From Lepidodermella squamata (Eukaryota; Animalia; Gastrotricha): a stretch of 64,000 nucleotides of DNA. The notes under the pieces are model-generated. The model ran no database searches. It saw only the letters and a program-made list of their open reading frames with translations, and was not told where the DNA came from. The stretch lies in contig JBLDXI010000017.1 in NCBI GenBank assembly GCA_047495785.1, positions 1,612,001 through 1,676,000 of the forward strand, written 5' to 3'. This document shows, piece by piece, positions 1 to 52,340 of the stretch. Both the position numbers and the translations under genes were made by a program. The stretch's first letter is position 1, and every line of letters begins with the position of its first letter.

Positions 1-898
1 CAACTGCATTTTGCTTTCAATTATCGGACCGATGAAAGGTCTTGCGCGATATATGGACAGCATGCCATTTGGCGCGGCTGGTTGCTATGTATCCCTTCTT
101 GGCGGGACGGTCATAATGTCGTCCTCCTTGATGATCCTGGCGCTCATCAGTGTCGAGAGGAGACTATGCACAACGACTAGCAACCGTACAGTTCGCGGGT
201 CTCGTTTGATTTGGTACGCCATTGCCGTAGTTGGAGTCACTGTGTTCAGTTTTCTTACATGGCTCGCTGTTTTCTATGGACTAGACGTCATAGAGCCGAT
301 GAATGTTTTGACGGTAAAGGGCCGGGTTACCGCATGTGTTGTCTTCACCAATCGCTTGTCAAGACTTGGCGCCGTCGAACTCATTTTCTTCATTTTAACT
401 TTCATTATACCCCTAGGAATAACTGTGGCAAACTATGGGTAAAATACTTATGCTAATTTGACAAGAACCAATAATGTTGTATCGTTTTTTCTTTTAAGGA
501 TGCTTTGGCGTTACGTCAGAGGCGCGCACACAGCTACAAACTACCCAAGCGAATCAAATGACGACTCGTCCTCAAAAGCGTCCCTAGCAACCAGAAGAAA
601 ATCGTCTAGCAGGGCAGTCAGTTTCAAACATCAAACTAAACGCGAAACTTTTCTCAGTCTCTTGATGGCGCTGTCAGTTGTAGAATATCTACTGCTTATA
701 ATGCCTTTAGAAATTGTTGTTGCAATTGTATGGCTTGATGAGCGTCAAGGACGCGTTTTGAATTCCAATCTGTCATTTGCTGGCTATGTGATGGTTATCA
801 TTGAAGCCTCCTTAAACCCGTTCTTACCAAGTTTCATCAGGCACAGAGCTAATGTGCGCCGGAGCCGTTCCAAAACGGACTCTGGCAGTGAGGCATAG
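1..898 (+). CDS. Class A (rhodopsin-like) GPCR, array member 1 (5' end outside window); intron 439-498
   Basis: TM3 'LISVERR', TM5 'IPLGITVANY', TM7 'LNPF'. The GT-AG intron 439-498 joins ORFs 11..442 and 458..898 in frame (NYG|MLWR). Confidence 0.85.
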
Positions 899-1556
899 AT
901 GAAGATTGATATTAAAATGACGATATTCTTACGAAGCATTTGAAATCTCTAATTGATACCCAGGTATTTTTTAGATGCGCTCCAGGCTATAATGTAGCAG
1001 ATGACCTTGCCAGTGTGAAAACACGCGACTATTTCCCACACCAGGTAGGATATTGTATGCAGTGCCCACTTGCCTGAGGAAGTATTTTTCTTCGCGGCCC
1101 GTAAGTGCATGAAGCCGTGCAAATTATTGGGTGAAGATGCGTATAATAGACCATAGCGTAGCAGTAAAAGAAAACACCCAAGTGCATGCATCGTGAAATA
1201 ATAAAGAGTGATTCTCGCGTACTTATATTCGTCGCGCTGGTGGCTACTATACCGGCTATAAAGTGCGAGCGAAAAAGCTACGAATATATTGAATTTCCAC
1301 TAATACATACGGCCACTGGGCAGCGTTTTTTGTATAGTTGACCATCATCCGGTCGGCAGGCATTCAGTGCTAACAGCCGCCGCCCATAACTACACACTGT
1401 TTTTCGCTCAAATTGTGACATAATAGCGCGCAGAACACGAGCCATTTAAAATATACGCAAACATCGCATATTATATATCAGTCCTCTAAAATAATCGACA
1501 CATTCCGCGATCAAATGACATGCATTGCAATTTTGAAAAATATTGATAGATAGAAG

Positions 1557-2678
1557 ATGGATTTGTTGAAGTGTTTTACATACCTCGAACCTGAGTCTTC
1601 AATTAACAAGTCTTGGCACTGTCGAACCAATGCCGTCAGCAACACTTCATCAGACTGCGGATTTCTCATCGACCAGCAATTCAATCGCCCACCCAATTGC
1701 GGATATTACGAGGCCGGTCTCATTATTTTCGTTAGCCTCATGGCGTTTCCATGTAATATGGTTGGATACTGGAACTTTTTGAACCGCCAACTGCATCCAG
1801 ATTTACTATTCCTGCTCGGAATTCAGTGTATCTGCAATGTAATGACAGCTTTTATTGGAATATTAAAAGGCTTGGCAAGATCTATGGATTCCTATCCTCT
1901 CGGCTCTCTTGGGTGTTACTTCGCGAATATCGGCGGAGCTTCCCTCTTAACGGCATCGCTTATGGTATTCGCTCTGATAAGCTTCGAACGGCGCCGTAGT
2001 ATTTCGCAGAAAGCTCGTCCAGCGCCTTCCCGAATGGGCGTTTACGCATTGATGGCTTTACTGCTGATAGTTTATAGTTTCTTGTCTTGGTTCTGTTTGA
2101 TGTTCGTTTTTGATGTTATCAAAGTTCACTCCGTCACGAATATCTACTCTATGACTGTTTGCGCCATTTACATCAACAGCCTTTCATCCCATGTTCCTGT
2201 TGAGCTGTTATTCGTCGCCTTGAACTTGGCTATTCCACTCTTAGTGATTCTAGTTAATTACAGGTATGTATCTTCAAAATGGATTAAGCGTTAAATACTT
2301 TTTCCGTTATGCAGAGCAATATGGGCTGAGCTCCGAAAATCGAGCGATGTAGCTCGGAAAGAGCTGTGGGGCTCGAAAAGCGCCTGGCTTGTCCTGATAT
2401 CTCTTGGGAATTCATCAACATCCCCGCAAGCTTCCAAATACCAACAGAAAAGAGAACGGTTCCTCGCTATACTGATGCTGGTATCTCTGTGTCATTTCTT
2501 GGTGTTTCTGATGCCGTTGGAGCTTGCGATCGCTTTAGTTTGGCTTGACGAAAGCAACGACAAGGTTCTCAATTCAAATCTCGTGTTCGTAGGTCATCTT
2601 TTAGTAATCGTCGAAGTAATGATGAACCCATTCCTGGTCAGTTTTGTTCACAAAAGAAGCTGCAATCGAAGCAGCTAA
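1557..2678 (+). CDS. Class A GPCR, member 2; intron 2264-2314
   Basis: N-terminal family motif (INKSWHC...CGFLIDQQFNR), SFERR, NPF. Spliced frame is open to TAA 2678. Confidence 0.88.
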
Positions 2679-2926
2679 AAAATCGCATGCCAAATACAGT
2701 ATGTATATGTGATGATGAACCATTTTTACTTAAGCTTCTTATTCTTATTGATTTTGGCGAGTGCAATCAAAATACAAGCATTATTTATGTGTCGAACAAT
2801 TTCGGGAGCCTCTTGAATAAAGCTTCGTCTATTTTTGTGATATTCTTCTCTTTGAACTCCTTTTGCATGACGTTCATGCGTACGAATAAATTACAACTTC
2901 CTGCTTAATAATATTACATCAACGGG

Positions 2927-3993
2927 ATGTCTCTATCTGACTGCTTCACGCTTTACGACCCAATTTCAACTCTGAACAAATCATGGCTCTGCTTCCCAAA
3001 ACCGCAGACTTTTTTCTATTCAACAGCCAACAAGTCAACTGTTTGCGGGTTCCTCTACTTCCAGCATTTCAAGCGGCCAACCGACTCGTGTGGTCTTCTT
3101 GAGGCTGCTATAATCATTTTTCTGAGTTTGATGGTGGTTCCATTCAATATCATGGGTTATTTCAATCTGGGCTGTCGGGGGATCAGAGAGGAGATGTTGC
3201 TGTTGCTGCGGATTTTCTGCTTCTTGAACTCAGGCTATTTACCAATTGGAATTTTATTCGCGCTGTCAAGGTTGATCGACACAATGCCGATGGGTAGCAT
3301 TGGCTGTGGAATCGTCTATTATTTAGGTGCTAGCTTTGCGACAACATCGTTGATGGTCTTGACTCTAATGAGTTTCGAGCGACGCTGGGCCGTAGTATGC
3401 CCAAGACGCAACGGCGAGCCTTCTCAAATCAAGAACTACGTCGTAGCACTAATCATTGTTTCATTTTACACCTTCTCAGCTTGTTTTGGCTACTTTTACG
3501 CTCTACCGGCACTTCAAACTATTACATTGATCCAGCATGAATTCCTCGACCCGGTTGCCGCTTGCGCTGTTATTGCAGACCCGTTTCCGCCGAACTTCCC
3601 AGGATGGGCTGTCCTTGCTGTATTAACCTTTACTGTTCCAATATTTTTGACGAGCTACAATTACGTGTATGATATTTCCAAACTTAATTAACCCCAGAGA
3701 ATATATTTCGTTACAGAGCAATAGCGATCTTCTTTTGGAGAATGCGAGGTGGAAATTGGAAGCCGGAAGAATCGCTTGAGCGTAATTTGGCGCTTGTATC
3801 GCTGCTTATCTTGGTCGAATTCGTATCACTCATGCTTCCCATGGTGGCCTCCGTTGTCCTGGTGTGGTTTGATCAAGACGATAGAAAACTGCATTCATCA
3901 ATTTCCTACTTTGGATTCACCTCTGCCTTACTTGGCGCCATTTTAAACCCGTTTCTACCAAGTCTCCTCACGACTTCCGCTTCTGCCGGGTGA
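2927..3993 (+). CDS. Class A GPCR, member 3; intron 3667-3716
   Basis: LNKSWLC motif, SFERR, LNPFLPS. A 50-nt intron after NY restores the frame. ICL3 is unusually short. Confidence 0.88.
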
Positions 3994-4172
3994 AATATAG
4001 TACTGGGTCGTTATCGATTGACAATCGGTTGGTGTTAAGCCCCTTGAAGACTTTTCTAATTTACTGATAGCAAATAGCATTGACAAAATCGATATGAATA
4101 CGCCTCATCTAAGCTGAATGATAAACGCCATGGTATAGAAGTAAAAAATAGGAAACCTAATGTGTGTATATT

Positions 4173-5260
4173 ATGGAGAATTCATCTTGCTTCGCGTTAT
4201 GGGATCCAATCACTTCTGTGAACAAATCTTGGCTATGCATCCGGCAAAATCGAAACGCCTCATGGGACTGCGGTTTCTTATTCGATCAACAATTTAACCG
4301 CCCGGAAGATTGTTATTTATACACTTACGTTGAAGCTGGACTTTTCTTTTTAATCAGCGCGCTATGCCCTCCATTTAACCTTATTGGCTTCCTGAATTTC
4401 AAACGCTGCCGCGTGAAACCAGAGCTGTTGCTGTTGATCGCTGCTCAATGTCTCTTAAATACGTTGTTGGCTGTTGTAGGTGTTTTCAAGGGCCTGGCCA
4501 AGATAATGCCGGGTATGCCACTTGGCTTTTTCGGCTGCTATATATCCTATCTCGGGATGGCAGTTCTAACAACAGCTTCTTCGTTGGTAATCGCTGTAAT
4601 CAGCGTCGAAAGAAGAATTTCTATAACACACTGCGCCATCTCACAGACACCGCGAATTGGGATCTACAGTGGGGTAGTTACAGCGATCATTATATACTGT
4701 AGCCTGTTTTGGCTCTTCGCTCTCAACATTTTCGGTATTTTGATGATTGTTGACGCTGATGGAGGCACAGCTTGTGCGGCCACTTTCAATTCTTTTCCAA
4801 CATATTTTCCCGGAGAAATTTTAATTGCAGGATCAGCTTGCTTTGTACCATTAGCTATCATTATTGTGAACTACGGGTATCGTTTAAACGCTGACTTTTG
4901 CTAATGTTTACGTTAACCATGCCGTTTTGAAGCATGATCATCTGCCACTTGCAAAAAGCTCATTCGTCGATGCAGTCTTCTTTGCTACAACAGACATCTT
5001 CATCATCATCTGTGATCAGAAACCAACAAAACCGTGAGAAGACCATAGCTTTTATAATGGCTATGTCTCTTCTAGAATTTCTCATTCTGATCCTTCCGGT
5101 TGAAATAACTATTGTTTTGGCCTGGCTCGACAGGGAAACGAAACAGCTGCAATCAAATCTTGCTTTCATCGCCTTTTTCTTGGGAATGGTCGAAGCAGCT
5201 ATCAATCCGTTTCTACCAAGTCTACAGCTGCTTTATCAAACGAGAAACAGAAGAGCTTGA
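4173..5260 (+). CDS. Class A GPCR, member 4; intron 4877-4932
   Basis: VNKSWLC...DQQFNR, SVERR, INPFLPS; in-frame splice NYG|MIIC. Confidence 0.88.
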
Positions 5261-5578
5261 CTGTTGATAAAATAAAAATTGCTAATAAATAAAAACGTTT
5301 TGTAAACGGTTCCCCAGTGATTTATGACTGAGGCCTTTTTATGCCCTTTATTGATCCAACTAATCGATGGAGGCTCATCGTTTTAAGTACAATGGTAACG
5401 TCTCTAGTTTGGCTACACAATAGAAGGTTCTCAAGCTAGTGCTTTAGCAAACATGAAGTGCTAATCGCATTATTGATTGCATTATTTAGCAATAGACTTT
5501 GCATACCCCCTGGCTAGTATTGCCACGCAATAGAAATAGGAGTCCACCAAATTTGTGGTTAAACTTGACCGGATTATC

Positions 5579-6747
5579 ATGGAATTTTTGCAATGCTTGG
5601 CGTTAGCTGATTCAGAAACATCAATTAATAAGTCGTGGATTTGTTTCCACGCAGTTAATTCGTCGATTGAGGAGTGCGGCTATTTCTATGACCAGCAGTT
5701 TAACCGAAATAACCCATTTTGTGGTTTATTCGAAGCTGGCCTTATGATATTGATAAGCCTGCTCTGCATCCCGTTCAATGTGATCGGCTTTTTGAACTTT
5801 AAACGACGGAAAATCAAAGCAGAGCTGCTGTTTCTCATCGCTGCTCACTGCGTCTTCAATTCACTGCTTACCGGCGCTGGATTAATCAAAGGTCTAGCGA
5901 GAGTCATGGATAGTATGCCTCTTGGCGACTACGGCTGTCAGATCACAGGGTTTATCAGCTCAGCGCTGTTGACAGCTTCCTTAATGGTCTATGCTATGAT
6001 TAGTTTTGAAAGGCGCATATGTCTTACTAGTATGGCTCCCAGCCAACAAGCACCACCAAGGATAAGAGCATACGCAGTCGCCTTGGCCTTCATGACGTTC
6101 TACAGCTTCGCATCATGGTTTGTGGTTATGAACGTCCTGGGAGTTGTTAGAGCTGTGAAATTCTCGCCTTTTTACTTGGAAACTCCAGTCGTGGCCTGTG
6201 CTGCCTTTTTTGACGTTTCACCTCACATCTTTCCGGCTGAAACTGTCGTTTTTACAACTGCTACGTTCGCTTTACCGCTTGCCATTATTTGTTCGAATTA
6301 TGGGTTAGTCGGTGGTTTTTAAATGCTAATATGATTGATTTATATTTGATTTTCTATCCCCGCAGAGTGATGCTTTTTACTGTTCAAAGAACACACAGAA
6401 ATTCATTGCAAAGCTCTTTCTTGCCGCGAATTGCTACTGCCAGCAGTCGTAATTCATGGCTCGGAAGTTTGCTTTCGTCCGGTCGAAGCGATACTGCGAT
6501 AATCAAACAACAACGAAAGCGCGAGCGAGTGTTATCGATGACCGTGATATGGTCCCTTGCTGAATTCATATTTTTTATTTCCCCCGTAGAGATAGCAGTA
6601 GTGCTCATCTGGCTTGACAAAAACGGAAGCAAAACTCTGCACTCGACTGTGTTTTTCTATGGTTATCTGCTTGGATTGATCGAAGCAGCGATTAATCCAT
6701 TCCTGCCCAGCTTTTTCTTCAAATCAAGGTTGAATAACAGAAACTAG
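5579..6747 (+). CDS. Class A GPCR, member 5; intron 6304-6365
   Basis: INKSWIC...DQQFNR, SFERR, INPFLPS; in-frame splice NYG|VMLF. Confidence 0.88.
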
Positions 6748-7042
6748 AAATTAATTACTGCGCATTTCCTTTTTCAGTGCAATTTTTATTAGTTCATGGC
6801 ATTGTAGCATAGAAGGTAATTTATGAGGTGAATAAAACAATGAGATTCAATATAGTGGCTGAATGCTGATTTTCTCTGCTGCGCAGGATTTATTCGCAAC
6901 TTTTACGTTGTTCTCACGTGGGAATTGCTGTGTGCTATCATTTTTTTAACGCAAAGTGATCGATATCTAGCAAAAAGTCTTTCATCAGATTTGCGGAGAT
7001 ATAACAGTACATGTCATTTGTCATTTGTTCGTAGTTTTTATT

Positions 7043-8460
7043 ATGCTTTCATCTTGTTTCTCGGTGATTGATGACAATTCCGCCGTTAACCAGTCCTGGG
7101 TCTGCTTAAAAGGTATCAACTTTCGGCAGTACGGTTTGGCCACGCGTGATGAACACGCCTGCTTCTTCCTCTACGACCAGCAATTCAATCGAGGCAAGGA
7201 GTGTGACTTTGCACCATATGTCGAAGCTGTTGTCCTGATTTTAATCAGTTTAACCGCTTTCCCAACAAACGTCCTCGCCATCCGCAACTTTTATCGAAAA
7301 CATGTCTCCAATGAATTCTTCCTGCTTATCAGCACTCAATCAATTTTTAATATGTTTATTGGTTTGATAGGAGTATTCCGAGGGCTAGCCAGGTAACTCA
7401 ACGCCCTTTTAACGTCTCCTTAATCAAATTTTACTTGTTATTTCAGAGCAATGCATGACTATCCTTTGGGCTACTTCGGGTGTAATTTGTCGCTTGGCTT
7501 AGGCGCATTCATGTCTTCATCGTCTATGATGACATCAGCGCTCACAAGTTTTGAGCGGCGTCACACCGTCTGTCATTTCGGCATCGATCAAGTACCTCGG
7601 CTAAAACAAATGATTGCTAGCCTTCTTGCGGTTGTTGTCGTTAATGCATTCCTTTGGCTTGTTCCGTTCAATATATCCAACGAGGTGCGAATTCTATCTG
7701 TCCCAATAATTCACGTTGAACATGACAATCAAACCGAATATGTCGAAGTTTGTGCAATCATGTCAGACAACTACAACATTTTCATGAACACTGCCTTCAT
7801 CTCTGTAACTTTCGTCATTCCATTTGTTGCAATCGCGGTCAATTACGCGTATGTTGCGATATCTTTCATGAAATTATATCCTCTGATTTGTCTAATTTTT
7901 TTAGATTGATTTGGAAATTTCTGTGGGAAACCCACTCCACCCACGCCTCAGCAAGTAACACATTATTAATGAACCAGCGGAGGCGAGAGGTATTTCTGAC
8001 AACCGTGACTGGTCTTTCGATCGTTGAATTTCTCTTCAGCTGCCTTCCGCTTCAAATAGCAATTATCCATGTTTTGTATGACCTGCATCACGAACATCAG
8101 CACATTCAGTCCTTCGCAGTGTACCTCGGTCACTGCTTTATGATTATTGATGCCGTAGTGAATCCATTTTGGACGAGCGTCGTGAAAATGAAGGCGGAGC
8201 GCAAAGCGGACCACGGGGATGGCACCTATCACGAGCTGTTAGGTCGCACTTCGTCGTTCCGCGACTCGTGCTTAACGACCAGACCGTCCGCAATTACCAT
8301 CAACTACGAGGGGTCTTACCAACGTATGTCGCCGATTTCGACTCATTCTTCATGCGCTCCGTCACCATCTGGTTCGACTTATGACTTCAGCGCCGCACTG
8401 AATGACAGACCTTCTGGCCATCAGTTTCTCTCTGTACAAAACAGTTACGGTTATCGATAG
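7043..8460 (+). CDS. Class A GPCR, member 6; introns 7393-7446 and 7849-7904; long Ser/Thr-rich C-tail
   Basis: VNQSWVC...DQQFNR, SFERR, VNPFWTS; both introns are GT-AG, phase 2. Confidence 0.88.
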
Positions 8461-9096
8461 CCCAAATATCTTATGCGAAGGCCTCATGGGAGGCAGTGAA
8501 AGCGTGAAAGTATAAAGATGATGCAATCACACTGAAACGTGTCTTTCGGCTGAATTGCTATCCGCAGTAATAGCACCCATCTATTGGGAAAACTTACCCA
8601 TTGATTGATACATTGCACCAAGTCGTATTAAAATGCATATAAAAACGGGTTAATTGCAAAAAACTGGGGGACGTTCCACTTTGAAGTAAAACTTATTAAA
8701 TTCAGCGATTGCTGCATTAAAAATTATGATCGCGATTTATTTCAAACAATTTCAATCTGTGAGTCTGTGACTAATCGCAGAATGTACTTGACTGACTTTC
8801 TTCGAAGGCGAAAGGACGAACGAATTAGTTATTCATCATAAACTAGATTTTCCCAGTTGACAAGAAAATAGCAAATTAAAGATGGCAGATATAGACTTTT
8901 AGTCCAGGCACTGTTATTATAAGGATAAGTTGTATAGCGAAATCGGAACAAAAACACAACAGTTATGATTCATTTCATTAGCAAATGGATTACCTGCGGC
9001 TTGGATTATGCTTTTGACACTGATTATATTATGATACACGAGTAAGTCATGAAAAGAGATTGCGAAAAGTGTCCATTTTTGTGAAAGCATGAAAAT

Positions 9097-10355
9097 ATGG
9101 AAACTTGTATCGACTTTACGGACCCGATTTCCGCCATCAACAAATCGTGGGTCTGCATCCCACGTTGGCAAGTCGATGGAAATTTGGTGCCTAGAAACGA
9201 AACGATATGCATGTTCATGTATGAACAGCAGTTTCATCGACCTCACCAGTACTGCAGTTACGTGGAAACGGCAGTTTTAATTTTTGTTAGTTTTTGGATC
9301 TATCCCGCGAATTATCAAGCCTTTATCAATTTTCGCAAACGTGGCGTTAAGCGTGAATTCCTACTTCTCGTCGCGATGTTGGGATTCTACAACGCCATCT
9401 GTGGTTTCTTCTTAGTGCTCAAAGCTCTTGGCAGGTAGGATAATGTTCAATTCAATAGTTATATACAGAATTAAAACTTTCCCGAAGGATGCAAGATGAT
9501 TGGCCCTTTGGAAGGTTCGGGTGTCTGTTGTCAATTGGACTTGCTACTATTGTCAGAATGGCAACTTTGCTCGTCATGGCTCTGATGAGTTTCGAACGGA
9601 GATTTTGTGTTGTTAGCATGCATTCTGCTTCAACAGCGAAATCTCGAATGCCATTCGTTGCAACTAGCATTGTTGTTATAAATTTAATATGCTTCGTGTT
9701 TTGGGCTGTGCCAATTATTGAATACAAAGTCATCGACATGCTACCCGTGATACTCGACGAAAGGACTGTTCAGGCGTGTTTTATCTTCCAACATCGAATC
9801 GGCTCCGGTACCTTTCTGGCAATGTTTATCTGTGCTACCTTTGCCCTTCCGCTTTCCGTGATCTGCTTTAATTACACGTGAGAGAATCTCCCTTGCTTTA
9901 TTCGACTTGCCTCAGCACGTTGCCTTTTATATTCCAGATATATTTGGATTTTCGTCCGCAAGAAAAACGCTGAAAGCTCAATCCAAGCCGAAAGCGTAGC
10001 AGTACTTGCCAATTCAAGCGAGCATGTCACCGACCCAGAAGTGCACAAGAGACACAAATTGCTGAAACGTCAACGTAGAAGCGAGGTGTTCCTTTCAATT
10101 CTAATGGGCGGCTCCTTGGTGCAATTCGTTATTTGCGCGATTCCTCTCCAAATAGCGGGCCTGTATATCAACTATGACCGAATGGTGACAAAAGAACACC
10201 GGTCACAAAGTTTCTTGATTTATATCGGAACGTTAATGGTCGCTGTCGACTGTGTTCTGAATCCATTCTGGTACAGCATATTACGATATAAAGCCCATTC
10301 TCATAGCCACATCAGTGGTGCGGCTCATGAGCATGAGCTGACGCCAACAACATGA
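9097..10355 (+). CDS. Class A GPCR, member 7; introns 9435-9487 and 9878-9937
   Basis: INKSWVC...EQQFHR, WPFG-x2-GC in ECL1/TM3, SFERR, NPFWY. Confidence 0.9.
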
Positions 10356-10658
10356 AAATAATCGAGGCTTTTTAGTGTGTTCCGTTTTTTAATCACCTTT
10401 TGAGTCTATTGCCCAACTTCCGTAGTAGTATGAGCGCTTAAATAAAATATCGACGACGGACACATAAGAGGAAAGGGATTTCCGAATTTCGGAGGCGGCA
10501 CGATTGCTCGCCTAACTGAACATCAAGTGCTCTTGGCCAGGCTTATTACCGCAAGACCTATAAAAAAGTGATGCTCGCATTCTTAATACGAGAGGCCGGA
10601 TATTTATGAGGTTATCCGTTCAAATGTCCTTTTATAGGATTTAGTCTTTTTTGAGTAA

Positions 10659-11921
10659 ATGGGTAGCTGTTTCGACTTTACTGACGATGAAACTTCTGTC
10701 AACAAATCTTGGATTTGCGTTCCGGCCAGCCGCCTCCCGGGCACTGAAAATGCATCCGTAGAAATATGTCTTTTTCTGTACCATCAACAACTGCAACGGC
10801 CGAGTGTGTGGTGTGGACGAATCGAAGCAATTGTGATGTTTAGTCTTGCTACTCTGGCGCTTCCTTCAAACGTGTGGGCTGTGATTAACTTTCATAGGAG
10901 GGCTGTTAGCCGAGAATTCCTTCTGCTTATTTCGGCATTAGCTGTCTACAATTGTCTAATAGCAGCAATTGAAATGTTGGCCGCTTACGCAAGGTGATAG
11001 ATTCCTTAAATGTTTAGCCTACCATTTTAAGTTACGATGCATTTGCAGGCTCCAAGATGAGTGGATGCTTGGCCATTTAGGCTGCGTTATATGTGAAGGA
11101 ATCTCGGTTGTCATTTTCACTGCATCAATGCTGTCGATGGCTCTCATCAGTGTCGAAAGGCGCTGCTGCGTTACAACCGTTTCCGCAGTGCAGCCATCTA
11201 GATTTCCGCAATTTGTCATAGCATTGATTGCAATAATCGTTTTCTCGGCTGTTTTCTGGGCATACCCGATATTCTACCAAGAAGTTTATGATACCTTGAC
11301 GCTGCAAATCGATGGCGTCAAAAACGGAACGGTGCCAATTGAATTATGTACCGTTTTCGATTACAAGATGAACAAGGCGATGGTATTTGCCTCATTTGGT
11401 TTGGTCACTTTTTTCGGACCTCTAATTTTAACAGCCTACAACTACACGTTAGTTGATCGATGACTTCTCCAATTACGAATTAAAGCTATTTCCTTTTCAG
11501 ATACATCTGGTACTTTGTTCGAAGGGTGCACAGGACGGAAAGGCAAATTAGATCCCACGTAATGTCTTTGGCAGCTCTTGGCGGTATGGACATTGTTAAA
11601 ACGGTCATGTCGAAGCGCAATTTTCGCCATCAAAGACGTCGGGAAATTTACCTCTCGACTTTGATGGGAATATCCTTGCTACAGTTTATCATCTGCCTGA
11701 TGCCATTGCAAGTGGCGGGATCGTCACTGGTTCATGATCGCATAACCGGCCGATATCAGACGCAATCCTTCTCGTTTTACGTCAGCAACTTGATGGTAGT
11801 GTTGAACGCTGTCATCAATCCCTTTTGGTACAGCCTTGTGCGATACAAGCCTAAATCCACCAAGTTCCTAGCGACGCCTAAAGATTCATCTTTACAAACT
11901 CATGATGAGACACAATCTTAG
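10659..11921 (+). CDS. Class A GPCR, member 8; introns 10994-11048 and 11448-11500
   Basis: VNKSWIC motif, SVERR, NPFWY; spliced frame intact. Confidence 0.9.
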
Positions 11922-12385
11922 GGGCATTGATGTTTCCACAGATTTTGTGATGATATCTTTTTTGTATGAAATTTGAGTTATTAGACACAAATCGTAGGTT
12001 CTTTGATGTTTAATCTCAGGTATTGAGTACGAGATTTCCGAATTGCCTTCCTTTCTTCAAGGGCTTTGCGGGAAGGATAAACTCGCTCGATTTTAACCCT
12101 TTTCCAATCGATTATGCATCTAAATTGTTCCATCGACGGTGGGCTGGATAACAGATATCATGAAAAGGATTATCATGAGAACTCGGACGTCTAGATTTCT
12201 AGAATAAGAGACACGATTTCTGATTTGCAGACACTGTTTTCGCAAAAAACCCTGACTTCTGTTCGTCTTAAATTTGCTTTGCACCTGTCTAAAAGGGCTT
12301 ATGTCGCAGCCGGTGGTCTAGAAAGAGGATGAGTTCGGCAATTCATACTGTTAGCTGAATCGGCGAAGCAGGTCATCTCAAAATC

Positions 12386-13618
12386 ATGGAAGCATGCTAC
12401 GATATTTTCGCAGCTGACACAGCAATCAACAAATCGTGGGTATGTGTGCCGAATTGGCGCATCGACGATACCTTGAATAAAAGTGCAGAGGGCTCGGAAG
12501 AATTCTGCTTGTTCCTTTTCGAACAACAGTTCAATAGAAGCCACTGGTATTGCGGCTACATTGAGGCAGCGATAATGCTGTTTGGTTGCTGCTGCGCCAT
12601 TCCGACAAACTTGCTATCTCTGAGGAACTTTTCGAAGAGAGGGGTCAGTAAGGAATTCATGCTACTTTTGGGATTCCTAATCTCCTATAACTTTATCCTG
12701 ATTCTGCTGAAGGTTATGAAAGCTTTCGCTCGGTAATTGAAGAGCATAGGTTTAATTAATAGTTGATATAAATACTTTTACAGAGTTTTGCCTGACTGGC
12801 CTCTAGGACAATTCGGCTGCTTCATGGGACTTGGATTTGGCTGCTTCATTCTTACAGCCTCAATGCTAACTATGACATTGATCAGCTTCGAGCGACGATT
12901 TTCCGTCACATCGATGTGCCCAAACCAGAACTCACGATTTCGCAGTTTACTGTTCGTCCAAGTTTTCGGGCTGATTTTCTCAGGAATTCTATGGTCCTAT
13001 CCTTTCATCTACCACCAAATCATGCAAATTATTCCTGTTTACATTGCCGGTGTGAAAAACGGGACAGAGCCGGTCAATGCGTGCTTTGCTTTGGAAACTA
13101 GGCTAGGTGCTCCGGCCACTTTTCTCATCATGTTCTCTACAGTGACATTTTTCATTCCACTTGCTTTAACAACTTTTAATTACACGTACATGTGGCACTT
13201 CGTTCGCAATGTTAGAAGAAGAGAAAGATCTGTAAAACTGATTGGCGATGTTCTGCTCGTCACCAGGACTTCAAGTAATCAAGATGAGCCCCTATCCTCA
13301 TCGCAATCAAGCAGTTTTAGCAACAGGCGGCGTCGTGAGGTTTTCCTAACGGTCCTCATGGTTGTTTCCCAAATCGAATTCGTTGTCAGCATGATGCCAA
13401 TGCAACTTGCTGGAGCTTACATTGCCTATGAAACGCATGTCGCGAAACGCTTTATAGCCCAGTCATTCCCAATCTACATTTGTGATTTGATGATTCTCTT
13501 TGATGTGGTCGTAAATCCTTTCTGGTACAGCCTCGTCCGTTATAAACGACGCCGCGCTAGTTCGGCAGCTAGCAATACGCTGTCACTGGACCGAATCTGT
13601 GGATCCGGCAGTAAATGA
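12386..13618 (+). CDS. Class A GPCR, member 9; single intron 12733-12783
   Basis: INKSWVC...EQQFNR, SFERR, NPFWY. Reads through NYTYMW with no post-TM5 intron. Confidence 0.9.
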
Positions 13619-13737
13619 CTTTTCCTATTAATCCGTAATCAATCGCATGCGGACTTCGCCTAAGCTTCTGTCAATCGAATGTCAGTTTATAAGTCGATTT
13701 TGGAATGAATAAACTGTATCCTATAATTCATCTAAAA

Positions 13738-15396
13738 ATGGCTATTAAGAGAGTGATATTTTCTTTAATGTGGATATCGTTTGGCTGCATTCGCCTGTCC
13801 CTGTGCAGGCGGCCTTGGAATGCTCAAACCGCTGGTAGTACGGTGAAATCCCACGCATCCCTTATTCATCCGTACAACGCCCGCCGCGAACGCGAACAAT
13901 CCTATCTCAGCCATCAAGCCAAAGATATAAGTGGTCTTCCTTACACTGATCAAGAAGCTGTCGAGTCTTACCTTGGTACATAAATCAATGAGCACTTGCG
14001 TTCTATGACGACCCTTATTTCACAGATTCGATCGAAGATTATGCTATCAGGAAGAAGAATACGACGCCGCAAGACATTCCTGAGGAAAGCATGCTCAAAT
14101 CCTTCTTAATTTTTAACGACATCTACGACAAGACAAGTCGGCCTGTTCTTGACGACCTTTCTGTTGTGAGTGTCAAAGTCGGCATTTCTCTCTACCACAT
14201 TTTGGACATCGATAAAAAGCAACAGCTGATGTCCTGCGTAATCGGAGTTCGAATGTCCTGGTACGACGAGTATCTGAAATGGAACACGAGAGAGTACAGC
14301 AATATCACAAAAATCCTTCTACCGTCAAGCGTTGTTTGGTTGCCGACAGATGTAGCGATTTATAACAACGCTGAAATCCAGCTCATCCATCCTGAAACGA
14401 ATGTAATTGTTTCTAATACAGGATTTGTCCTATGGATGTTTCCAAGCCTGGTTCGATCGATCTGCCTATTAGACTTCAGTTGGTTTCCGGTATTACTGAA
14501 CTTCAGCAGAAAATCCCTGTGAAATTGTTGAAACTGTTTAGTTCGATGAGCAAACCTGTGACATCATTTTATCGCCTCTGAGCTTCGATGTGAACAAGCT
14601 AAATTTAACGACATGCCATGGTTGCAACGTCAGTTATTACGACGAGCAGGGACAGGAGTGGGCCGTTAGTTCGAATCCTTGCAACTTTTACCATCTATAT
14701 TGTTGCTTTTAGCTGTCATCCATCGAGCCATCGAGGCTCGAAGTGCTCGAGTCTTTTCATCCAAACAGAGTCGTATCCCGAATTTACTTTCGCTTTACCC
14801 TGAAACGCAAGCCTCTATTTTACCTATACACTTCAATTTTTCCCTGCCTACTCATCTACGGTGTTACCCTCCTTAGTTTCATGGTACCAGGTAAATTCGC
14901 TTAACAGTTTATACCTATTGTTCTAATTCGGCAATTTGCAGTTGAGAATCGCGGAGGAAAAATCGAGTTGCCTCTCACTTGCCTGTTATCTGTGGTTGTA
15001 CTAATGATGACACTTGCGGATACTTTGGCAGCTACAGACAAAATTCCATTGATATCAAAACTCTACGCTCTCACCATGACTCAATGCTGCCTGAGTTTAG
15101 TTTTCAGTGTTACCGTCACAACTCTGGCACAAATGGGGTCCAAGTATGCAATTCCGAAGAGCCTACTATTACTGACGTATCCGTTAAAAGTTATCCAAGG
15201 AGACAGATTAAGGCGAGAGGCCCAGAAACTGGAACAACTGGAAACAATCAATTTACAGCCAAACCTTCATCATCGATATGAACATGTTGCATCACGGCAA
15301 GATTGGGAGAGATTAGCCGGTCGGCTGAATTTGATTTTTATGATGCTTTTTTTAGTACTAACTGTCGTTGGCTATTTTCTCTGCGTACCTTATTGA
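13738..15396 (+). CDS. Cys-loop ligand-gated ion channel, divergent non-alpha nAChR-like subunit; introns 13976-14025, 14490-14541, 14665-14712, 14891-14941
   Basis: Signal peptide, 'YDKTSRPV', 'WYDEYLKWN', Cys-loop 'CLLDFSWFP|FDEQTC', pre-M1 'LKRKPLFY' and four TM segments after splicing. An alternative in-frame ATG lies at 13705. Confidence 0.9.
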
Positions 15397-15920
15397 GAAA
15401 GCTATATTTAGTTGGTGCGGTACTTGAAGCATTTTCGAAAGCGTTTTATCCATCGCTTAATAAAATCATTCAGGTAAAACTGTATATAAAGTTGCATGAA
15501 GGCGATGAAGAAAGGATCTAGTTAGTTTCATCTCGCGGATAATACACTGTGTGATTAAATGAAGCGTGAGTTAGACATAAGAAAAAAGCGGAAGTAATAT
15601 CTTAGCCGCCGCTCAGAGGATCATAAGAACAATTTCTCGATCGATACATCCTATATTCGAAATTGAGCCGAGATCCCCTTGCGCTCTATTGTTCTCACTT
15701 ATGGTGAATCATAAGACACTGGTTGTCTCAAAATAAGGAGGTGAAAGTCGCCATTTCAACTTTTTGTATTTCATTGACGCGCTGTCCACTCGATAAGTCA
15801 GAAAACAACCTGTGGCGACAAGCAACAATTTTATTGCGCACGAATATCTTGAGGCATTCTTATAATTAGCGCATTTCGATGAGGTAGACTCTTCATCACA
15901 AAACCTGTATAGTGACGGTC

Positions 15921-17179
15921 ATGATTGGTGCTTACGACGGCATACCTACGAGTGAGTACGACGCGAGCAGTTCATGTCCGGGGCTATCATTGCTGTCTTT
16001 CGATGCCTTACCCGAAAATACCTCACATCTGACCAATTGCAAAGGAGATCGTGCTCAACTTCGCGGGGATTTGTTTGAACGGCATTTCTTTTCAGACTGC
16101 AGCCTTTACATCGACGCGGTTATCATTGCTACACTCGGCCTTGGATGCCTCTGCTGCAACATTATAGCCTTCAAACAGCTGGGGATGAACAAAAACTTAA
16201 ACTTGAGGTACTGCGCTTTGGTCAAGTCCACAGCTGTCCTAAACATCTTAATAACCGCTGTGATAGTCGGCAGAAGTTTCACTAGGTATGGCTCAGTTAT
16301 ATGCTAAACGCTTTGCACAACATAAATTGAACTTTACAGGCCTATAACGTTTTATCCTTTCGGCATTGTTGGATGCATTACTTTCATCAACGTTTGTCCA
16401 GCAGTCAAGACATTCGCCTATTTAATCCATGCTATAATATCATACGAACGCCGCCGAGCCGTTCTTTTAACACAGACAGTGCATCGAAGCAAAACCGAAA
16501 CTGGAGCGAAAAGTGTCACTATCCCGATCGCGGTCTCCGTTTTCCTGACGACGACGGTGTGGTGTTACATAAGCGTGACATTCATTGACATACAATCGAT
16601 ATGCTTCGGTAGCTCAACTGCGCCTGTTGATGTTTGCGTGATCTCCACGTCGAGATTGCCCCGACGGCAGTCATTCGGCATCCTCTGGTTATTCATGCTA
16701 ACTTTCATTATGCCACTTGTATTCGCAATTCTCAACTACTCGTAAGGAAATTAAATTGTTTAACAATTTAATATTTAAGGCTTTAAAATAGGGCTGTTTG
16801 GCGTTCCTATGCAAAATTCAAACATTTGATAAAGGATTCCGTGATTGGCCTTTACCTGTTCGTGCCTCCCGTCAAGTCAACGATTCTTGACATCTGCCGC
16901 AAGAAAAAGGCGCTGCAAATGCGATTCCGGATGAAACAAGAATTGGTTCTATCAGTCATCGCCGGCTTATCGACCATTCAATTCATCTTATGTTCGATAC
17001 CGTTGCAAGTTGTGTTTTCCCTGGCTCTGTACAGCGCCGTCACCCTTCAACCAGCTTCACTCAATACTGTGAAGTTCATCTCAGACTGTGTCCTTCTAAT
17101 TGACGGCGCAACAAATCCGCTATGGGTAACCTTGTTAGCAAACCGTCTAATTAAAAAGCCACCTCACTTCATTATGTGA
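15921..17179 (+). CDS. Class A GPCR, member 10 (most diverged N-terminus); introns 16286-16339 and 16742-16791
   Basis: Spliced: FYPFGIVGC...ISYERRR, MPLVFAILNY, CSIPLQ, TNPLW. Same two intron positions as members 6-8. Confidence 0.82.
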
Positions 17180-17535
17180 CGATAAATTAGGCGAATAAAC
17201 GCTGAGAAGCGAGTAAACATAGGGACAAGGAAATGAAACGCAAAGCTCGATAAATTTACCTTTCGTTGTTGAAGCAAACATTGGCTCACTTTACACCGGT
17301 ACAGCCGCACTTTGCGGATAACAAAATATTTGATTGATACTTACATGCAGGAAGCTTTTTCGGCGTGCAGTTGTATCGGAAGTGGGAGGAGTGAAAAGCG
17401 CCTTGAGGTCTATCTCTAATTCTTGACTGGAGCCTGGATGCGCGTGAAATGCGCAGCGATAATCGTGCGAGACGCATTAATACAGCGATTTTCAGTCTTA
17501 AAATGTTGACCGTCTGAACAACGCTACGTTCAAAC

Positions 17536-18984
17536 ATGCTTAGCTGTGCTAAAGACGCTGGCTACAACACATCATGGCTGTGCATGTCGATACCATCCCG
17601 TGGCTGGCCGAATTCACAACAGTGGTTTCTCTATCTTCAGCAATTCAATCGGGATGTCGCAGCTTTTGGATATGTTGAATCATCAATCATCATTCTGCTA
17701 TGCGTCGCAAGCTACGCAACCAACGCTTTTTCAATCGTGAGATTTTACCGACGCCAAGTTACTGCCGAGTTTTTCTACCTACTGACGACGTTGTGCATCT
17801 GCAACACAGTACTCACGTCCCTTGGTCTCATGCTTGGCGTCACACGGTTCAGCGGTAGCTGGCATTTCGGCAGTATCGGTTGCGGGGCTTACTTTGGCGG
17901 AAGCTTAGCGGTCATCACGCTGACGATATGGATTCTGGCCCTGGTCAGTGTTGAACGGAGACAGGCGTTGACTAAAAATCGCAAAAACCTGGCTGATATG
18001 TACCAACTCACCCAGGGTCGAGTCACGACGATACTAGGAGTTCTGATCATCACAATCGTTGGGCTATGGGGTTATATCTATGCCTGGCTTCAATCTGCGG
18101 TTGCTATAGAAGCTAACGTACCTGGTTACGAAGAACCAATGACAGTCTGCTCGATATTCCCCCAACGATTGCCGCAGAACGTCTACCTCCACACCCCGCT
18201 AATCTTAACTGCGGCTAGTTTGATCCCGTTCGGAATCACTCTTGCAAACTACACGTAAGTTGGCAGAATTCATTTAGCAGGTTGAATTTGCCCTTTTTGC
18301 AGGAGTATTTTGATGGCGATTCGGAGAATGTCGCAAAGGATGGCCAACTATGAGCAAAAGGCCTCGGAGTATGAAGCTAAAAGGGCATCGGAATGCGGTC
18401 GAAGGGCGATGCTGACATTTGACCGCAACGTATTGCTCTTAGCATCGCGATCAATACATTCAGTGCGAAAACGCCAACGCGAATTGCTGCTCGCGAAGCT
18501 AATGGCTGGTTCGCTTCTTGTCTTTGTAATCTCGCACCTGCCGTTCTTCATCATCATGTTCTACGTGAATACGCCACGCGCCGGAAATGCCGGCTTCGAA
18601 TCGTCGTACTTCACATGGAGCGTCGCGTTGCTCTACGCCAACGCCGCTGCTAATCCTTTCCTTTTCTATTGCTTCGAACCGGACTGGTGGCACCCACGCG
18701 CCAGCATCAAAGTGTTGATTGCGTCCTGGAACCGTCCATTGCCGCGCCTCGACGAGTGTAGGGCCCCGTCCTTCGCCCTCACTGAAGCTGGGTCAGTTAC
18801 AGGCTTCGATCTTAACCAACTGGTTATGAGCGAATCGCCCGTTTTGGCGCGCAAAAACTCGTCACGATCTTGCGAACGTGTACTACGCGTTTCGACGTTT
18901 TCCGATAATGCACCAAATCCAACTGTATTTTACCAATCGCCCCGATCACAAAAGAGCGTTATCAAACGACAAAGTCTAGTTTAA
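17536..18984 (+). CDS. Class A GPCR, member 11; intron 18255-18302; long C-tail ending -QSLV
   Basis: YNTSWLC...FLYLQQFNR, WHFG-x2-GC, SVERR, FVISHLPFF, ANAAANPFLFY. Confidence 0.9.
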
Positions 18985-19065: not shown

Positions 19066-22000
19066 CTATTGTGATCTTTTCCTAGCTTCAATGATCATGT
19101 CGTAGAAGTTAGCTGCCAAGGTTTCAGTATTGAAAAACTGCCGGCCATCTTTAGCCTGATTGCTGAGAGTTGACGCGCGGCATGCAACTTTGAATGAGCG
19201 TCGGCTTGCCGGGTCACTGGTCACGCTTGAAACCATACGGCCACATGATATCGTGTCTAGGTAGAATTGGTGATTGTTCGCGGCCACGTTGCCAAGTGCG
19301 AAAACTTCGTCGTTCGCAGCGTCGGATGTTGAAGATTCGTCTGAGGTGAATGCCCAGAGAATTTGGAGTGGGCGATTGGCTGGACATGTCACAACATTAC
19401 AGGTGAACATGCAGCCACGAGCTGATACATTAACTGAAAAGAAATTTGGTTTAATTTGAAGTATGAGGCCTTTTATGGTCAACCTTTGATTGACAAAATT
19501 ATCGGCCCGTAGTGAAAGCTGAAGTTCATATAAGCTCGTCCCTGGTGATGCCCGGGAATTGCTGAGGCCACTGGGTTCACTGAAGTGGAGCAGATTCCGG
19601 CTTCGGCTAGTTGCCGTTTCGAAAAAGCGTACTTGTACAGCTTTTTATTACCTTGCTCCAAGCTAAAAGATAAATCAATGAAAATCACCCTAAATTGGAC
19701 AAAATGTCTACCTGGTTGTATTTCTGGAGAAGATTCCAGAATGCTGAACATCCCATTCAGGGACAACAAATGAAAATGTAGGTAATGGCGCAATTATCTG
19801 AGCCATCGTTGAAATATTGAAAAATTCGCCGCAATCGACCGAAAACGTGATGGACGCATTTTCTGATTTACTCAAATCTACCGGACCGAGTGGCGCGAAC
19901 GAATCAACTGTCGATCCATACTCATCGTAGGACGTCGAGAGGTGGCTCGCGTTCTCCGAAATTTTTTGCCCGTCCAGAATTAGAGTGGCCCCTGTTATCC
20001 GAGGATTCCCAACATTCAACTCGGCAACTGGATCATCTTCTGCTAACATCAATCGATCAATTATATGGATCACCCCATTAGCGCATCCTATATTGCTGAA
20101 GAGAATCTTTCGGGAGAAAAAAACATTGTAGAGGGGTAAGCCGAAAAAAAGTTGGCATACCTTGTAACTCTCATCTCCATTCAAAAGTTGGTAATTGTTC
20201 CGACCATTTTCTACAACGGCTATTTCTTTGTTAAATTCCTCACGATTGCCTAGAAGTTCGTTGATCGCCGATAAATTGCTCGGTCTAATGAAACCAGCGT
20301 CGTAAGTCATAACCGCCGGCGTTTGGCCTTCCCTTTCCATGACAACAGGTACATCCGTGTAGAAAATATGCCGATCCCAAACTCGCTGCATGGCCATACG
20401 ATTTCGTAAGAGGGCGTTCGCGCCTTTCTTCGTGCGAAGGCCTGGCCAAGAACTTTCGATAGGAACAAACATGATCCACCATTTTTTGACCGATTTGACC
20501 CCATTCGCGGATTTGGTCGAAGTTCCTGAGACACCCTGGTCTGAGAAACCCAACTGCCGTAGAGAGGCCGCAGTTGAACTAAAGAAATTTGTTCAATATC
20601 TTGAAATTTGAGGAAAAGTGATTCCTTACTTCAAATTAGATCCAAAGGAGTTGATGGTGTCAAAAACTCCCCGGTTTGGCCGGCCAACGAAAGAGTCGAT
20701 ATAATGAACAATGTCATTCGCAGCGGCTATATCGCTGTAGCCACGGATTATTTTCGCCATGCTAAAACCGTCACTTATAAATAAATCTGATGAAAACACA
20801 AAAATAATGGTTTTTGAACTTTTCGATTAAATCTGTACCCACCGTTATGAATTTTAACGATATTCAGCCTCGTTCCGGATAAAGTTGTCAGGAAAGAAGC
20901 GAACGGCAGCACCATCTCGTCGACTGAAACGAGCTGTTTAAGGTTGCTAGTCGCAAATTGGCCGCGAACTACGAGCCCTTTCAGTAAGGATTCGATCTTG
21001 TCAACGTTTTCACTTCGAAAACGAGCAACATCGCCGACAGCCGAGTCGATCGGCGCGAAAACCGTGTATCTCGTCGTAGTTATAAGTTGCTCGCGAACTG
21101 CGGCGGCCGATGAGATCAGGGACGCGAATTTAGACAGATTTTCAAGTTTCCCCAGCGCTGTCGCCAAGTCGTCATTCGGTGGGGTCAAAACGGAGTCAAT
21201 GAGATGAACAACGCCATTGGATAGAGTGATATCGGCCTGGTTAAGCCTAATTCGAGCGCCGTTGTAGGTGACAAAGTTCGAATCACTGTTCGTATCTTGA
21301 ACACCCTGAACTACAGAATATTCCATTGGGTATAGCGTGCCTGGTTTCATTTTTCCGGTAAAATAAGCTGCGCTGAAGCTAAAATGAGCTAACAAGGTCT
21401 GCAAGAAATGAAATTTAAAATAAAATTGATTTTTTTCTAAGTTTTACCTTTCTTGCATCTGCTGGACTGGACTTGATTTTATCAAACAACCCTGGCTCCA
21501 TTTTGGCGAAAGCTTCATCAGTCGGCAAAAACGCAGTGCCGAGGCGTAGCTCTTTCAATGTCGACAAAATTGTTGCATCACTTGCAGCAACAGCATCGAC
21601 CAGATCATTGAACATCGACAGGCTTTGTGAAAAATTGAGATAATTTTAATTTTAATTATTTTTCTCAAAATTTACCTATTTTCGGTAGATTGTAAGAACC
21701 CGTAGAGAGTTTGAGGTTTTCCAAGTGGTAGCAAAACTCGATTTAAGGCGTAAACATAGCAAGCCGATGAATTTGTAAAACTGTCAACAACCCGAGCTCC
21801 ATTCACGTAGTGCGCAGTCTTAAATAATTACAAAAAATATAATTGAATTTTTTAATAATTGAAAATATACCGTCTCGTATTGCTCGGTCGGATCTGATTC
21901 CGCAGCCTGGCTTGCGAACACTGGAACGCTGAGTAGAGTTTGATCGATATCTCGCCAATAAAAGTCGGCCAGTTCGATCCGATTCGACAAGTCGATGCCA

Positions 22001-34677: not shown

Positions 34678-35754
34678 CAAAATAGCCTTTTGATGTTTCC
34701 TTCAATCAGCTTATATTTCTAGAAAAAAAGATTCTGTAATATAACAGCCCTCGATAGCACTCGTAGCTTTCGAGATCCACAGCGGATAACAAAATCACAC
34801 AACTTGCCACAGCTCCTCAATTAACAACGCAAATTTCGATATGAATCTAAAACCTCACAATTGCAACAACTGTTCGACGGCTCATTCAAAACTAAATCCA
34901 ATCCTAAATCCAAATAATGCATACTGGCAACGAAACCATAAAAAAAGCATGAAAAAGCAGTGCCAGCTGAAGTAAAAATTATCACCTAGTTGCCAATATT
35001 CTCGACATGTAGAAATATGGCCCAAGCAGACAATAATAAAATGGTCCTCATTCCTTTTCCCACATTACACAGAGTACAGTCCACAGTTCACAGTTCACAG
35101 GTGAATAGTGTGGGCGAAAATAGCCGCACCAGCACACAGCACCCTACTGCCAGCAGCTTTCGGGAGTTGACCATTTTAGGGGTGCGCGATTTTTCTTCGA
35201 AACCATAAAAACGACATATAAAATTATAAAATTTGCAAGTGATTATTAAAAATGAATTTTAAGCATTTGCCATTTTTGTATTTTGATGTTTAAATTTGGC
35301 GCGCGCTAAAAGTGCCCGGAGCAGCCGCGCAAGTTTTAGCCCTTGCTTCCCGATGGGTCCCGCCAGCCTTCGTGAGGAATAACTTTTGGCTATTCATAGC
35401 TCGTGGCTAGATGAAGTTCATCGTTCTCTATACTCTATAGCGTACTTTACTTCAAGCAGGGTCAAGTTTGTTCTGCGAAAAATCTGTAAAAGGCGATTTT
35501 CTCCATGTTTGCGTTCTGCAGTTGACAAACTAACTGTCTTTTGTCTTTTTCCTGTTCTAAGTAACCACCTACCACCTCTACTCAGCCAAAAGCAGCAAGG
35601 CTTTGCCAATTTACGAGTGCGCGTTATTATTCTCTTTATCAAGTTGAAGCAAGCCTGGACCTTAAAGCTCTTATTTCCTACATCCAATATCCAATTCATA
35701 TTTGCAATATGCTTTCTAGATTAGAGATGGTTTATACCTGTTGAGAAGTCTTTG

Positions 35755-49297: not shown

Positions 49298-49745
49298 AAA
49301 AACACTCCGGATGCGTTGTGATGACAAGCTCCTAGAAATATATGCAACTTTATTTCGCTATCTTTTTTTTTAGTTTCGAATACTGCTCTGAAAAAAATTG
49401 AAATTGTCATAAAATAAATAGCAATATTAGTCGCTTTTATACTCTAAGCATTTAGCTGATATTTATTATTTGTTTTATATCTCTCTGAAATGCTTTTGAG
49501 AATCCAGACTGAAAAGTAAAAATGAAATTTTGTCAGCTGAAGTTTTACAGACATCATTGTTTGTGTCTGAGATGTGAGATGAAACTGCCAAGAGAAGCGC
49601 CGTGAGACAATGGCGATGAGACAGGTCAAGGTGTTTCATTCAAGGTCACGAGAAATGGACGCGTCAACATTGCATCCAGCGGCGGAAACACTCCGAGTTT
49701 ATTTAAGACATTTTCCAAAATTACTTAAAAATTTTAAGGTTGATA

Positions 49746-50315: not shown

Positions 50316-50806
50316 ATAAAGGCCGATTCGCTTGGCTGAACAAAAATCTATCATGTACAAGTACAACCAATCTTGAATTTATAATATTAAATTTGCAAGA
50401 GTAAAAAAATAGATCGATGGAATTCGAGGTATTTGCGCGATTTATTTAAAAGGATAAAATGCGACTAGAATGGCTATTACCTTTCAATGCATGGTCAACT
50501 TGATGGTTAAATGACGATAAAACGCTGCACTCCGGGCAGTCTAATTCCATCCCCTAGGAAGAGAGTATGGGTCTTAGACCTAATCAATAGGAATCGCCCC
50601 AGTGGCAGCCGAAGGTTTTTAGTTTTGTATCCTTATAACGTTTTTTATATGTCGGCCAAAAAAATTACCTGCGGCTTGAAACCTGTCTGGTTTCAGGACA
50701 CGAACTCGTTTGTTTTTTTATGTTTTCGGTAAAAGACAAACAATTGTTTTTTCGGTGTGACTTCCGCGCATTATCATCCAAATTAGTATTCAGGTTTCGA
50801 TTATAG

Positions 50807-50858: not shown

Positions 50859-50929
50859 TGGGCCGTGCAGAGCGGCATTATTGGTTACCTTAATTCACTT
50901 TCAATTTACTGATTATTTTTCACTTTAGA

Positions 50930-52310: not shown

Positions 52311-52340
52311 AAAATACTTCATGGATCGCTAACATCTGAC

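Follow-up and report, generated by a model that had tools for sequence, protein, structure and literature searches.

An array of receptor genes interrupted by a channel gene

The first 18,984 nucleotides of a 64,000-nucleotide stretch of DNA from the gastrotrich Lepidodermella squamata (assembly GCA_047495785.1, contig JBLDXI010000017.1, positions 1,612,001 to 1,676,000; hereafter the window, GC content 42.7%) hold eleven genes for G-protein-coupled receptors (GPCRs) of class A, G1 to G11, all on the + strand, and a gene for a Cys-loop channel subunit. The gene models were made from the window by coordinates, with splicing read from the sequence. Ten of the receptor genes are complete and encode proteins of 338–466 amino acids (aa) free of internal stops; the 5′ part of G1 lies upstream of the window edge, and the array extends 5′ of the window. 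In the rest of the 64 kb, no additional family members were found. All twelve spliced frames, including that of the channel, are open, which rules out artefactual or broken genes. An earlier reading of this DNA, made from the letters alone (the sequence-only reading), had described eleven same-strand seven-transmembrane (TM) genes with intact spliced frames and a pentameric ligand-gated ion channel between G9 and G10, and the gene models agree with it on each count.

The 15 receptor introns are GT-AG introns of 48–62 nt, in phase 2 throughout, and occupy two homologous sites, one after an Asn-Tyr in TM5 (10 of 11 genes) and the other after an Arg in TM2 (G6–G10). Such confinement to two sites and one phase is not a product of chance splicing. 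Single exons match Pfam 7tm_1 with E values of 5e-18 to 9e-6, and the class A positions N1.50, C3.25, R3.50, P5.50, P6.50 and NP7.50 are invariant in all eleven receptors. Pairwise identity is 17–44% (mean 28%); G10 is the most divergent member (17–20% identity to the others, with an eroded N-terminal motif) and G11 the least derived. Fourfold-degenerate sites are saturated (20–31% identity) while the frames are still intact, which argues for long purifying selection. The order of genes in the tree (G1–G5, G6, G7–G9, then G10 and G11) tracks their order on the DNA, and, together with saturated sites and open frames, this fits an old series of tandem duplications, made one step at a time under such selection. 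A lineage-specific tandem expansion with chemoreceptor-like evolution, as originally proposed, thus finds support in the gene order and in the hypervariable pocket positions described below.

Kinship with FFAR4/GPR120

Where among class A receptors does this family belong? The sequence-only reading could not match it to a named family, a view we revise, as profile searches, the phylogeny, an N-terminal motif and structure comparison lead to an offshoot of FFAR4 (also FFA4 or GPR120). Compared with solved structures, a profile of the N-half exons found human FFAR4 best, at 56 bits, with the next receptor at 37. Against 1.84 billion proteins the same profile first retrieved about 40 metagenome proteins (those traced come from ENA assemblies), which we call the relatives, and next the FFAR4-like proteins of amphioxus, Gigantopelta, Argonauta and Lineus together with guinea-pig and sperm-whale FFAR4. 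For those invertebrate FFAR4-like proteins, FFAR4 in turn heads the PDB matches (226 vs 198 bits), and each half of the window family can be aligned to them by HHalign (99.6% and 99.3%). In an IQ-TREE phylogeny under LG+C20, whose outgroups were the GPCRs retrieved by the family profile itself rather than the full class A repertoire, the window genes and the relatives form one clade (100/100) that is sister to, not inside, the FFAR4-like clade (98/85). Within it, G1–G10 make up a group of their own (86/84) apart from the relatives' copies, and G11 pairs with its probable orthologue in a related animal, P0131 (100/99). The FFAR4-like grouping was also recovered in both free trees of an approximately unbiased (AU) test analysis, including after removal of the N-terminus.

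Local motifs and predicted structures point the same way. A hidden Markov model (HMM) of the N-terminus, built from invertebrate FFAR4-like proteins only, scored nine of ten window N-termini at 6.3–12.7 bits (G10 fails), compared with a maximum of 5.3 bits among 24 other GPCRs, and the window scores beat those of nearly all shuffled sequences. Conversely, an HMM of TM6–7 from the window genes gave FFAR4-like proteins a median of 29.9 bits vs 4.7 for others, a comparison of non-independent sequences whose p-value is indicative only. In Foldseek searches, ranks 1–7 for a model of G5 exon 1, made from a family-only alignment with a predicted local distance difference test score (pLDDT) of 91.7, were all FFAR4, which also took ranks 1–2 for the full-length relative P0125, modelled by AlphaFold2 with seven helices and a pLDDT of 87.6. 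The ESM Atlas returned generic clusters only, of 7tm_1 and of the channel-type ligand-binding domain (LBD), and a word-index search found no homologues of G9 exon 2. Nematode chemoreceptors of the Srw/Srx type were ruled out by the lack of a Pfam hit, and an amine receptor by the lack of D3.32.

Several results weigh against this placement. The AU tests, run as fast LG+F+G4 searches, leave most rival placements unrejected (p 0.06–0.30; heuristic searches), the single rejected one being somatostatin-like (p 0.04, N-terminus removed), and the stem branch of the family is long (0.87). VIA-align, which uses pure geometry, ties FFAR4 with many peptide receptors. The C-half profile, when compared with the PDB, ranks somatostatin and cannabinoid receptors first, with FFAR4 not among the best 60, and exon 1 of G11 alone places FFAR4 about 24th among its PDB matches. 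The sequence-only reading held that one-to-one orthology with known peptide or lipid receptors would tell against it; kinship with one such receptor was indeed found, but it is many-to-one. On balance, descent of this GPCR family from the FFAR4/GPR120 clade, many genes to one, appears very probable from the sequences compared.

Lid, pocket and activation core

Human FFA4 has its N-terminus folded into the helix bundle, where it shields the pocket, and binding there is driven by hydrophobic contacts; R99(2.64) makes no ligand contact and holds D30, E43(1.35) and F304(7.36), which stabilises a lid of aromatic residues (PMC10473637). Much of this arrangement recurs in the window genes. The positions of F25 and F27 are aromatic in nine of ten N-termini each, with Gln at the position of D30, and the clamp is likewise kept: E1.35 in 9/10 (Asp in G10), R2.64 in 10/11 (Lys in G4) and an aromatic residue at 7.36 in 10/11. 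G2–G9 further carry four extra N-terminal cysteines around a confidently predicted β-hairpin.

The walls of the pocket behave differently. At 15 ligand-contact positions the paralogues share 18% identity vs 30% for the bundle background (p 0.02), whereas the same positions in invertebrate FFAR4-like proteins across phyla stand at 48% vs 40%; the difference between the two sets has a p of 0.0024, or 0.0006 when only columns conserved in the FFAR4-like proteins are used. A lid that is kept over walls that vary suggests a repertoire for different hydrophobic ligands. It speaks against so direct a reading that the contacts of docosahexaenoic acid (DHA) and TUG-891 (F88, F115, W198, W207, W277 and F303) are mostly replaced and variable in the window genes. 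With these FFA4 contacts largely lost, we can only infer lipid-like ligands, towards which the sequences incline us slightly.

The activation core has been altered as well. Position 2.50 is Asn in 11/11 window genes and 19/19 relatives, D2.50 being lost, and 7.45 is Glu or Asp in 8/11; W6.48 is absent from all eleven, and Y7.53 is present in G7–G9 only. R3.50, P5.50, Y5.58, F6.44, P6.50 and NP7.50 are retained. As judged from these residues, coupling to G proteins is likely and sodium allostery has probably changed. Because FFA4's contact residues are mostly replaced, its switches are lost and orthology is many-to-one, we file the genes as an FFAR4-derived family rather than as FFA4.

The embedded Cys-loop channel

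The channel gene has five exons and four introns (among them 14665–14712) and encodes 496 aa from its first ATG. Its start is at 13705 or 13738, the latter giving a signal-peptide-like N-terminus. Human α4, α2, α9 and α7 lead the PDB matches of its LBD exon (E about 1e-23). The Cys-loop is intact, and four TM helices, an MA-like segment and the lack of an anion-type PAR motif place it in the cationic branch resembling nicotinic acetylcholine receptors (nAChRs). Of the residues that form the acetylcholine (ACh) site, only the loop A Tyr is kept: Gly stands in place of the loop D Trp, loop B lacks its Trp, and neither vicinal cysteines nor tyrosines are present in loop C. The subunit could thus supply neither face of an ACh site. 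Aligned with α7, M2 has Gly at −1′, Glu at 2′, Leu at 9′ and Asp at 20′, and the pore is probably cation-conducting. A word-index search found no homologues of the LBD exon, and a search for related loci gave only AT-rich, unrelated ones; neither yielded an orthologue of the channel.

The absence of an ACh site, noted in the sequence-only reading, is borne out by loops B, C and D. The likeness it drew to cephalopod chemotactile receptors did not survive comparison, the channel being no closer to them than any nAChR-like subunit is; octopus CRT1 is not among the best 60 of 153 PDB matches of the LBD exon.

Linkage between channel and receptors

The distance from the G9 stop to the channel start, 86–119 bp, is the shortest spacer in the array, the others measuring 179–658 bp. 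At 13708, downstream of a TATA-like box (13686–13693), G9 has a likely polyadenylation signal that shares sequence with the first in-frame ATG of the channel (13705); the 3′ untranslated region (UTR) of G9 thus probably overlaps the promoter or 5′ UTR of the channel. A G9–channel operon is disfavoured by this TATA-like box and by the lack of a good or trans-splice-like acceptor before the channel. No upstream k-mer is shared among the array genes beyond what shuffled sequences give, and a shared promoter motif was rejected.

Among five loci of relatives with usable flanks, we found no orthologous channel–GPCR linkage. In four of them (L003, L005, L007 and L009) the flanks that are available hold no channel gene; L003 is itself an array, whose five to six family members have the TM5 intron in common with the window genes, and what breaks the row there is a gene with Sushi domains rather than a channel. 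The fifth, L024, tells against a purely incidental channel: a same-strand orphan Cys-loop gene lies 535 bp upstream of the family member P0139. In the product of this intronless gene (L024:225-3310), the LBD is preceded by a signal peptide, some 600 aa of additional N-terminal domains and a stalk rich in Thr and Glu. The L024 channel differs in type from that of the window (over 107 aa the two are 25% identical, and the window LBD exon has no significant match in it), and L024 was on these grounds rejected as an orthologous linkage. The gene also has a very short M3–M4 loop and an in-frame TAG at 1416–1418 (an error, a pseudogene or read-through). A single non-orthologous adjacency among the five could reflect chance, or both families gathering in the same labile regions. 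The sequence-only reading had made the channel part of the receptor system; no orthologous linkage, shared motif or operon signal ties it to the GPCRs, and functional coupling of the two now seems improbable.

Gene coordinates and surrounding loci

Table 1. Receptor and channel genes of the array (window coordinates)
Gene	Span	Exons	Strand	Evidence
G1, FFAR4-like GPCR, 5′ part outside window	1..898	<1-438, 499-898	+	open spliced frame 278 aa
G2, 356 aa	1557..2678	1557-2263, 2315-2678	+	7tm_1 E 4e-6
G3, 338 aa	2927..3993	2927-3666, 3717-3993	+	7tm_1 E 1.7e-7
G4, 343 aa, Lys at 2.64	4173..5260	4173-4876, 4933-5260	+	spliced frame
G5, 368 aa	5579..6747	5579-6303, 6366-6747	+	exon-1 model pLDDT 91.7, Foldseek ranks 1-7 FFAR4
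G6, 435 aa	7043..8460	7043-7392, 7447-7848, 7905-8460	+	spliced frame
G7, 381 aa	9097..10355	9097-9434, 9488-9877, 9938-10355	+	spliced frame
G8, 384 aa	10659..11921	10659-10993, 11049-11447, 11501-11921	+	spliced frame
G9, 393 aa, no TM5 intron	12386..13618	12386-12732, 12784-13618	+	7tm_1 E 5e-18
Cys-loop subunit, nAChR-type non-alpha	13705/13738..15396	to 13975, 14026-14489, 14542-14664, 14713-14890, 14942-15396	+	Neur_chan_LBD E 9e-32
G10, 384 aa	15921..17179	15921-16285, 16340-16741, 16792-17179	+	spliced frame
G11, 466 aa	17536..18984	17536-18254, 18303-18984	+	spliced frame

Downstream of the array (Table 1), a Fasciclin-domain gene on the − strand (19700–21600) converges on G11; at the locus of the probable G11 orthologue (L005) the neighbours are homeodomain and ADA2 genes, so the flank of G11 is not conserved. 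A two-pore-channel-like gene with two Ion_trans stretches occupies a single open frame of 2.8 kb at 35752–38577 (+). From 40.5 to 63.8 kb the window holds a housekeeping block (RMD1, RCC1/BTB, ARPC2 and FERM-PTP) that is syntenic with that of a relative; its ARPC2 is 73% identical to that of a metagenome animal with the same gene order, and 42–49% identical to those of named animals. Within the block, the 9 kb at 49300–58500, with small Cys-rich and four-TM genes, correspond to 2.7 kb in the relative (L001:11004-13708) and are, by this comparison, another lineage-specific insertion.

Several family members in L004, L007, L008 and L009 are intronless, two of them in tandem in L004, which suggests intron loss or retroposition in their lineage. 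A separate set of marine metagenome contigs (L010–L020; 21–25% GC, up to 104 kb) carries nAChR-like Cys-loop genes without introns, often as a pair at one locus, which encode a signal peptide, the loop B Trp and the vicinal cysteines of loop C (e.g. L014:7915-9561 and 10622-11917). In L014 these lie among genes for a metacaspase, GARS-AIRS, a kinase and a DegP protease in a gene-dense, intronless setting; from such features, L010–L020 look like giant-virus DNA encoding nicotinic-like channels.

Discussion

What might these receptors do? The explanation we favour is an old tandem expansion of FFAR4-like receptors for diverse hydrophobic ligands, probably sensory, with the channel incidental, and we give it, as a whole, a probability of about 0.5. 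The array would have arisen as an FFAR4/GPR120-like receptor gene was duplicated stepwise in an invertebrate with a small genome. Each paralogue would bind a hydrophobic small molecule of its own (a fatty acid, an oxylipin or another amphiphile derived from food bacteria, algae or biofilm), held under the N-terminal lid, which the new disulfides may staple further, and the receptors would signal via G proteins in sensory or gut cells. The channel subunit would have been brought in by genomic rearrangement and would not be an obligatory partner. Mammalian GPR120 contributes to fat taste, although oral fat detection does not strictly depend on it (PMC9678415), and tandem chemoreceptor families derived from other receptors are a known pattern (PMC11526382, PMC11886862); together these make a sensory role plausible, and by such analogy we think the receptors probably chemosensory, facing either the exterior or the gut lumen. 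That they form a new gastrotrich chemoreceptor family derived from FFAR4, a set of lipid 'taste' receptors capped by a lid and rewired in the sodium pocket, is a more specific proposal that we put forward tentatively.

Might the receptors instead read internal lipid signals, endogenous lipids or microbial metabolites, in metabolic, endocrine or immune control? FFAR4 ancestry would fit, since mammalian FFA4 works in gut, fat and macrophages, as would the dispensability of GPR120 for oral fat detection mentioned above, and the copies are old and stable in an array without pseudogenes, unlike the fast birth-and-death arrays of odorant receptors. Eleven copies whose pocket varies more than its background, however, are the pattern of a diversifying repertoire, and relatives have independent arrays; we regard a purely internal role as rather unlikely. 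The ligands could also be peptides, amines or other small molecules, with the FFAR4 link ancestral only or a long-branch artefact. The long stem, the rival trees left standing by the AU tests, the preference of the C-half profile for peptide receptors in the PDB and the replaced pocket residues would all be accommodated in that case, and FFAR4 is itself nested among peptide-receptor-like sequences. Four largely independent lines, namely the N-terminal motif, the E1.35/R2.64 pair, the TM6–7 profile and the structure search, nonetheless lead to FFAR4, and the lid that occludes a peptide-sized entrance has been retained, which makes non-lipid ligands unlikely.

A third possibility concerns the channel. 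In an integrated chemosensory locus, GPCRs and channel would be co-regulated in the same sensory cells, where the channel would either sense hydrophobic cues ionotropically or serve as the depolarising effector. The shared strand, the short G9–channel spacer, the loss of the ACh site and the second, independent adjacency in L024 are what one would expect of it; the different type of the L024 channel, which makes that linkage non-orthologous, the four of five relative loci with usable flanks that have no channel, and the lack of both a shared upstream motif and an acceptor for operon processing are not. We accordingly consider such a locus improbable, and its narrower form, an FFAR4-derived lipid 'taste' repertoire with the channel as co-expressed partner, very doubtful.

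How does the expansion of FFAR4-like receptors compare with known systems? Nearest in trees, profiles and Foldseek are FFA4/FFAR4/GPR120 and the invertebrate FFAR4-like clade (Branchiostoma, molluscs, Lineus, Owenia, Strigamia and bryozoans), with which the window family has in common the class A fold, the aromatic lid motif of the N-terminus, the E1.35–R2.64 pair, the Cys of extracellular loop 2 and the Pro and Tyr of TM5. Unlike that clade, it comprises many paralogues instead of one or few, has N2.50, lacks W6.48, W4.50, W198 and most DHA contacts, reads E/R/R for D/E-R-Y and bears the extra N-terminal cysteines on a predicted β-hairpin. Like the class A expansions of lophotrochozoans (PMC11886862) and the trace amine-associated receptors (TAARs; PMC11526382), the array is tandem and lineage-restricted, with a diversified pocket and no one-to-one orthologues for G1–G10. 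It differs from the lophotrochozoan expansions (Nath et al. 2025, PMC11886862) in its probable origin from the FFAR4 branch and in being known from sequence alone; that survey has no hits for FFAR or GPR120. The channel, for its part, shares with the cephalopod chemotactile receptors CRT1/CRB1 an nAChR-derived build without the aromatic ACh cage, but is a single gene outside the chemotactile clade and is likewise known only as a sequence. In oysters, 13/132 nAChRs only keep the full site (PMC6896357), and the window channel is like the non-alpha nAChR-like subunits of bivalves and lophotrochozoans described there in having kept the Cys-loop and lost the vicinal cysteines and principal binding residues. 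Unlike those bivalve subunits, it is intron-containing, single and set inside a GPCR array, with Gly at −1′ together with Glu at 2′ in M2.

Both tandem expansions of class A receptors and nAChR-like subunits insensitive to ACh have been described before. An expansion of the FFAR4 branch with a diversified pocket was not found described in the literature searched, in which few subscription journals were covered and neither invertebrate expansions of FFAR4 nor the chemoreceptors of gastrotrichs turned up as the subject of a paper. Deorphanisation of most lineage-specific GPCR expansions in invertebrates is blocked because no ligand class can be assigned. Here, by comparison, the FFAR4 ancestor is identifiable, its pocket has been solved, the lid is kept and the walls are varied, which makes a directed lipid screen possible. 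If true, the reading would provide natural examples of a swap between D2.50N and an acid at 7.45, and would bear on the ancestral ligand of bilaterian FFAR4. Should the receptors be lipid chemosensors, the receptor line that senses fat in vertebrates would have become a sensory repertoire independently, a new origin of chemoreceptors comparable to that of TAARs from amine receptors, and the array would hold this phylum's first molecular candidates for a role in chemosensation.

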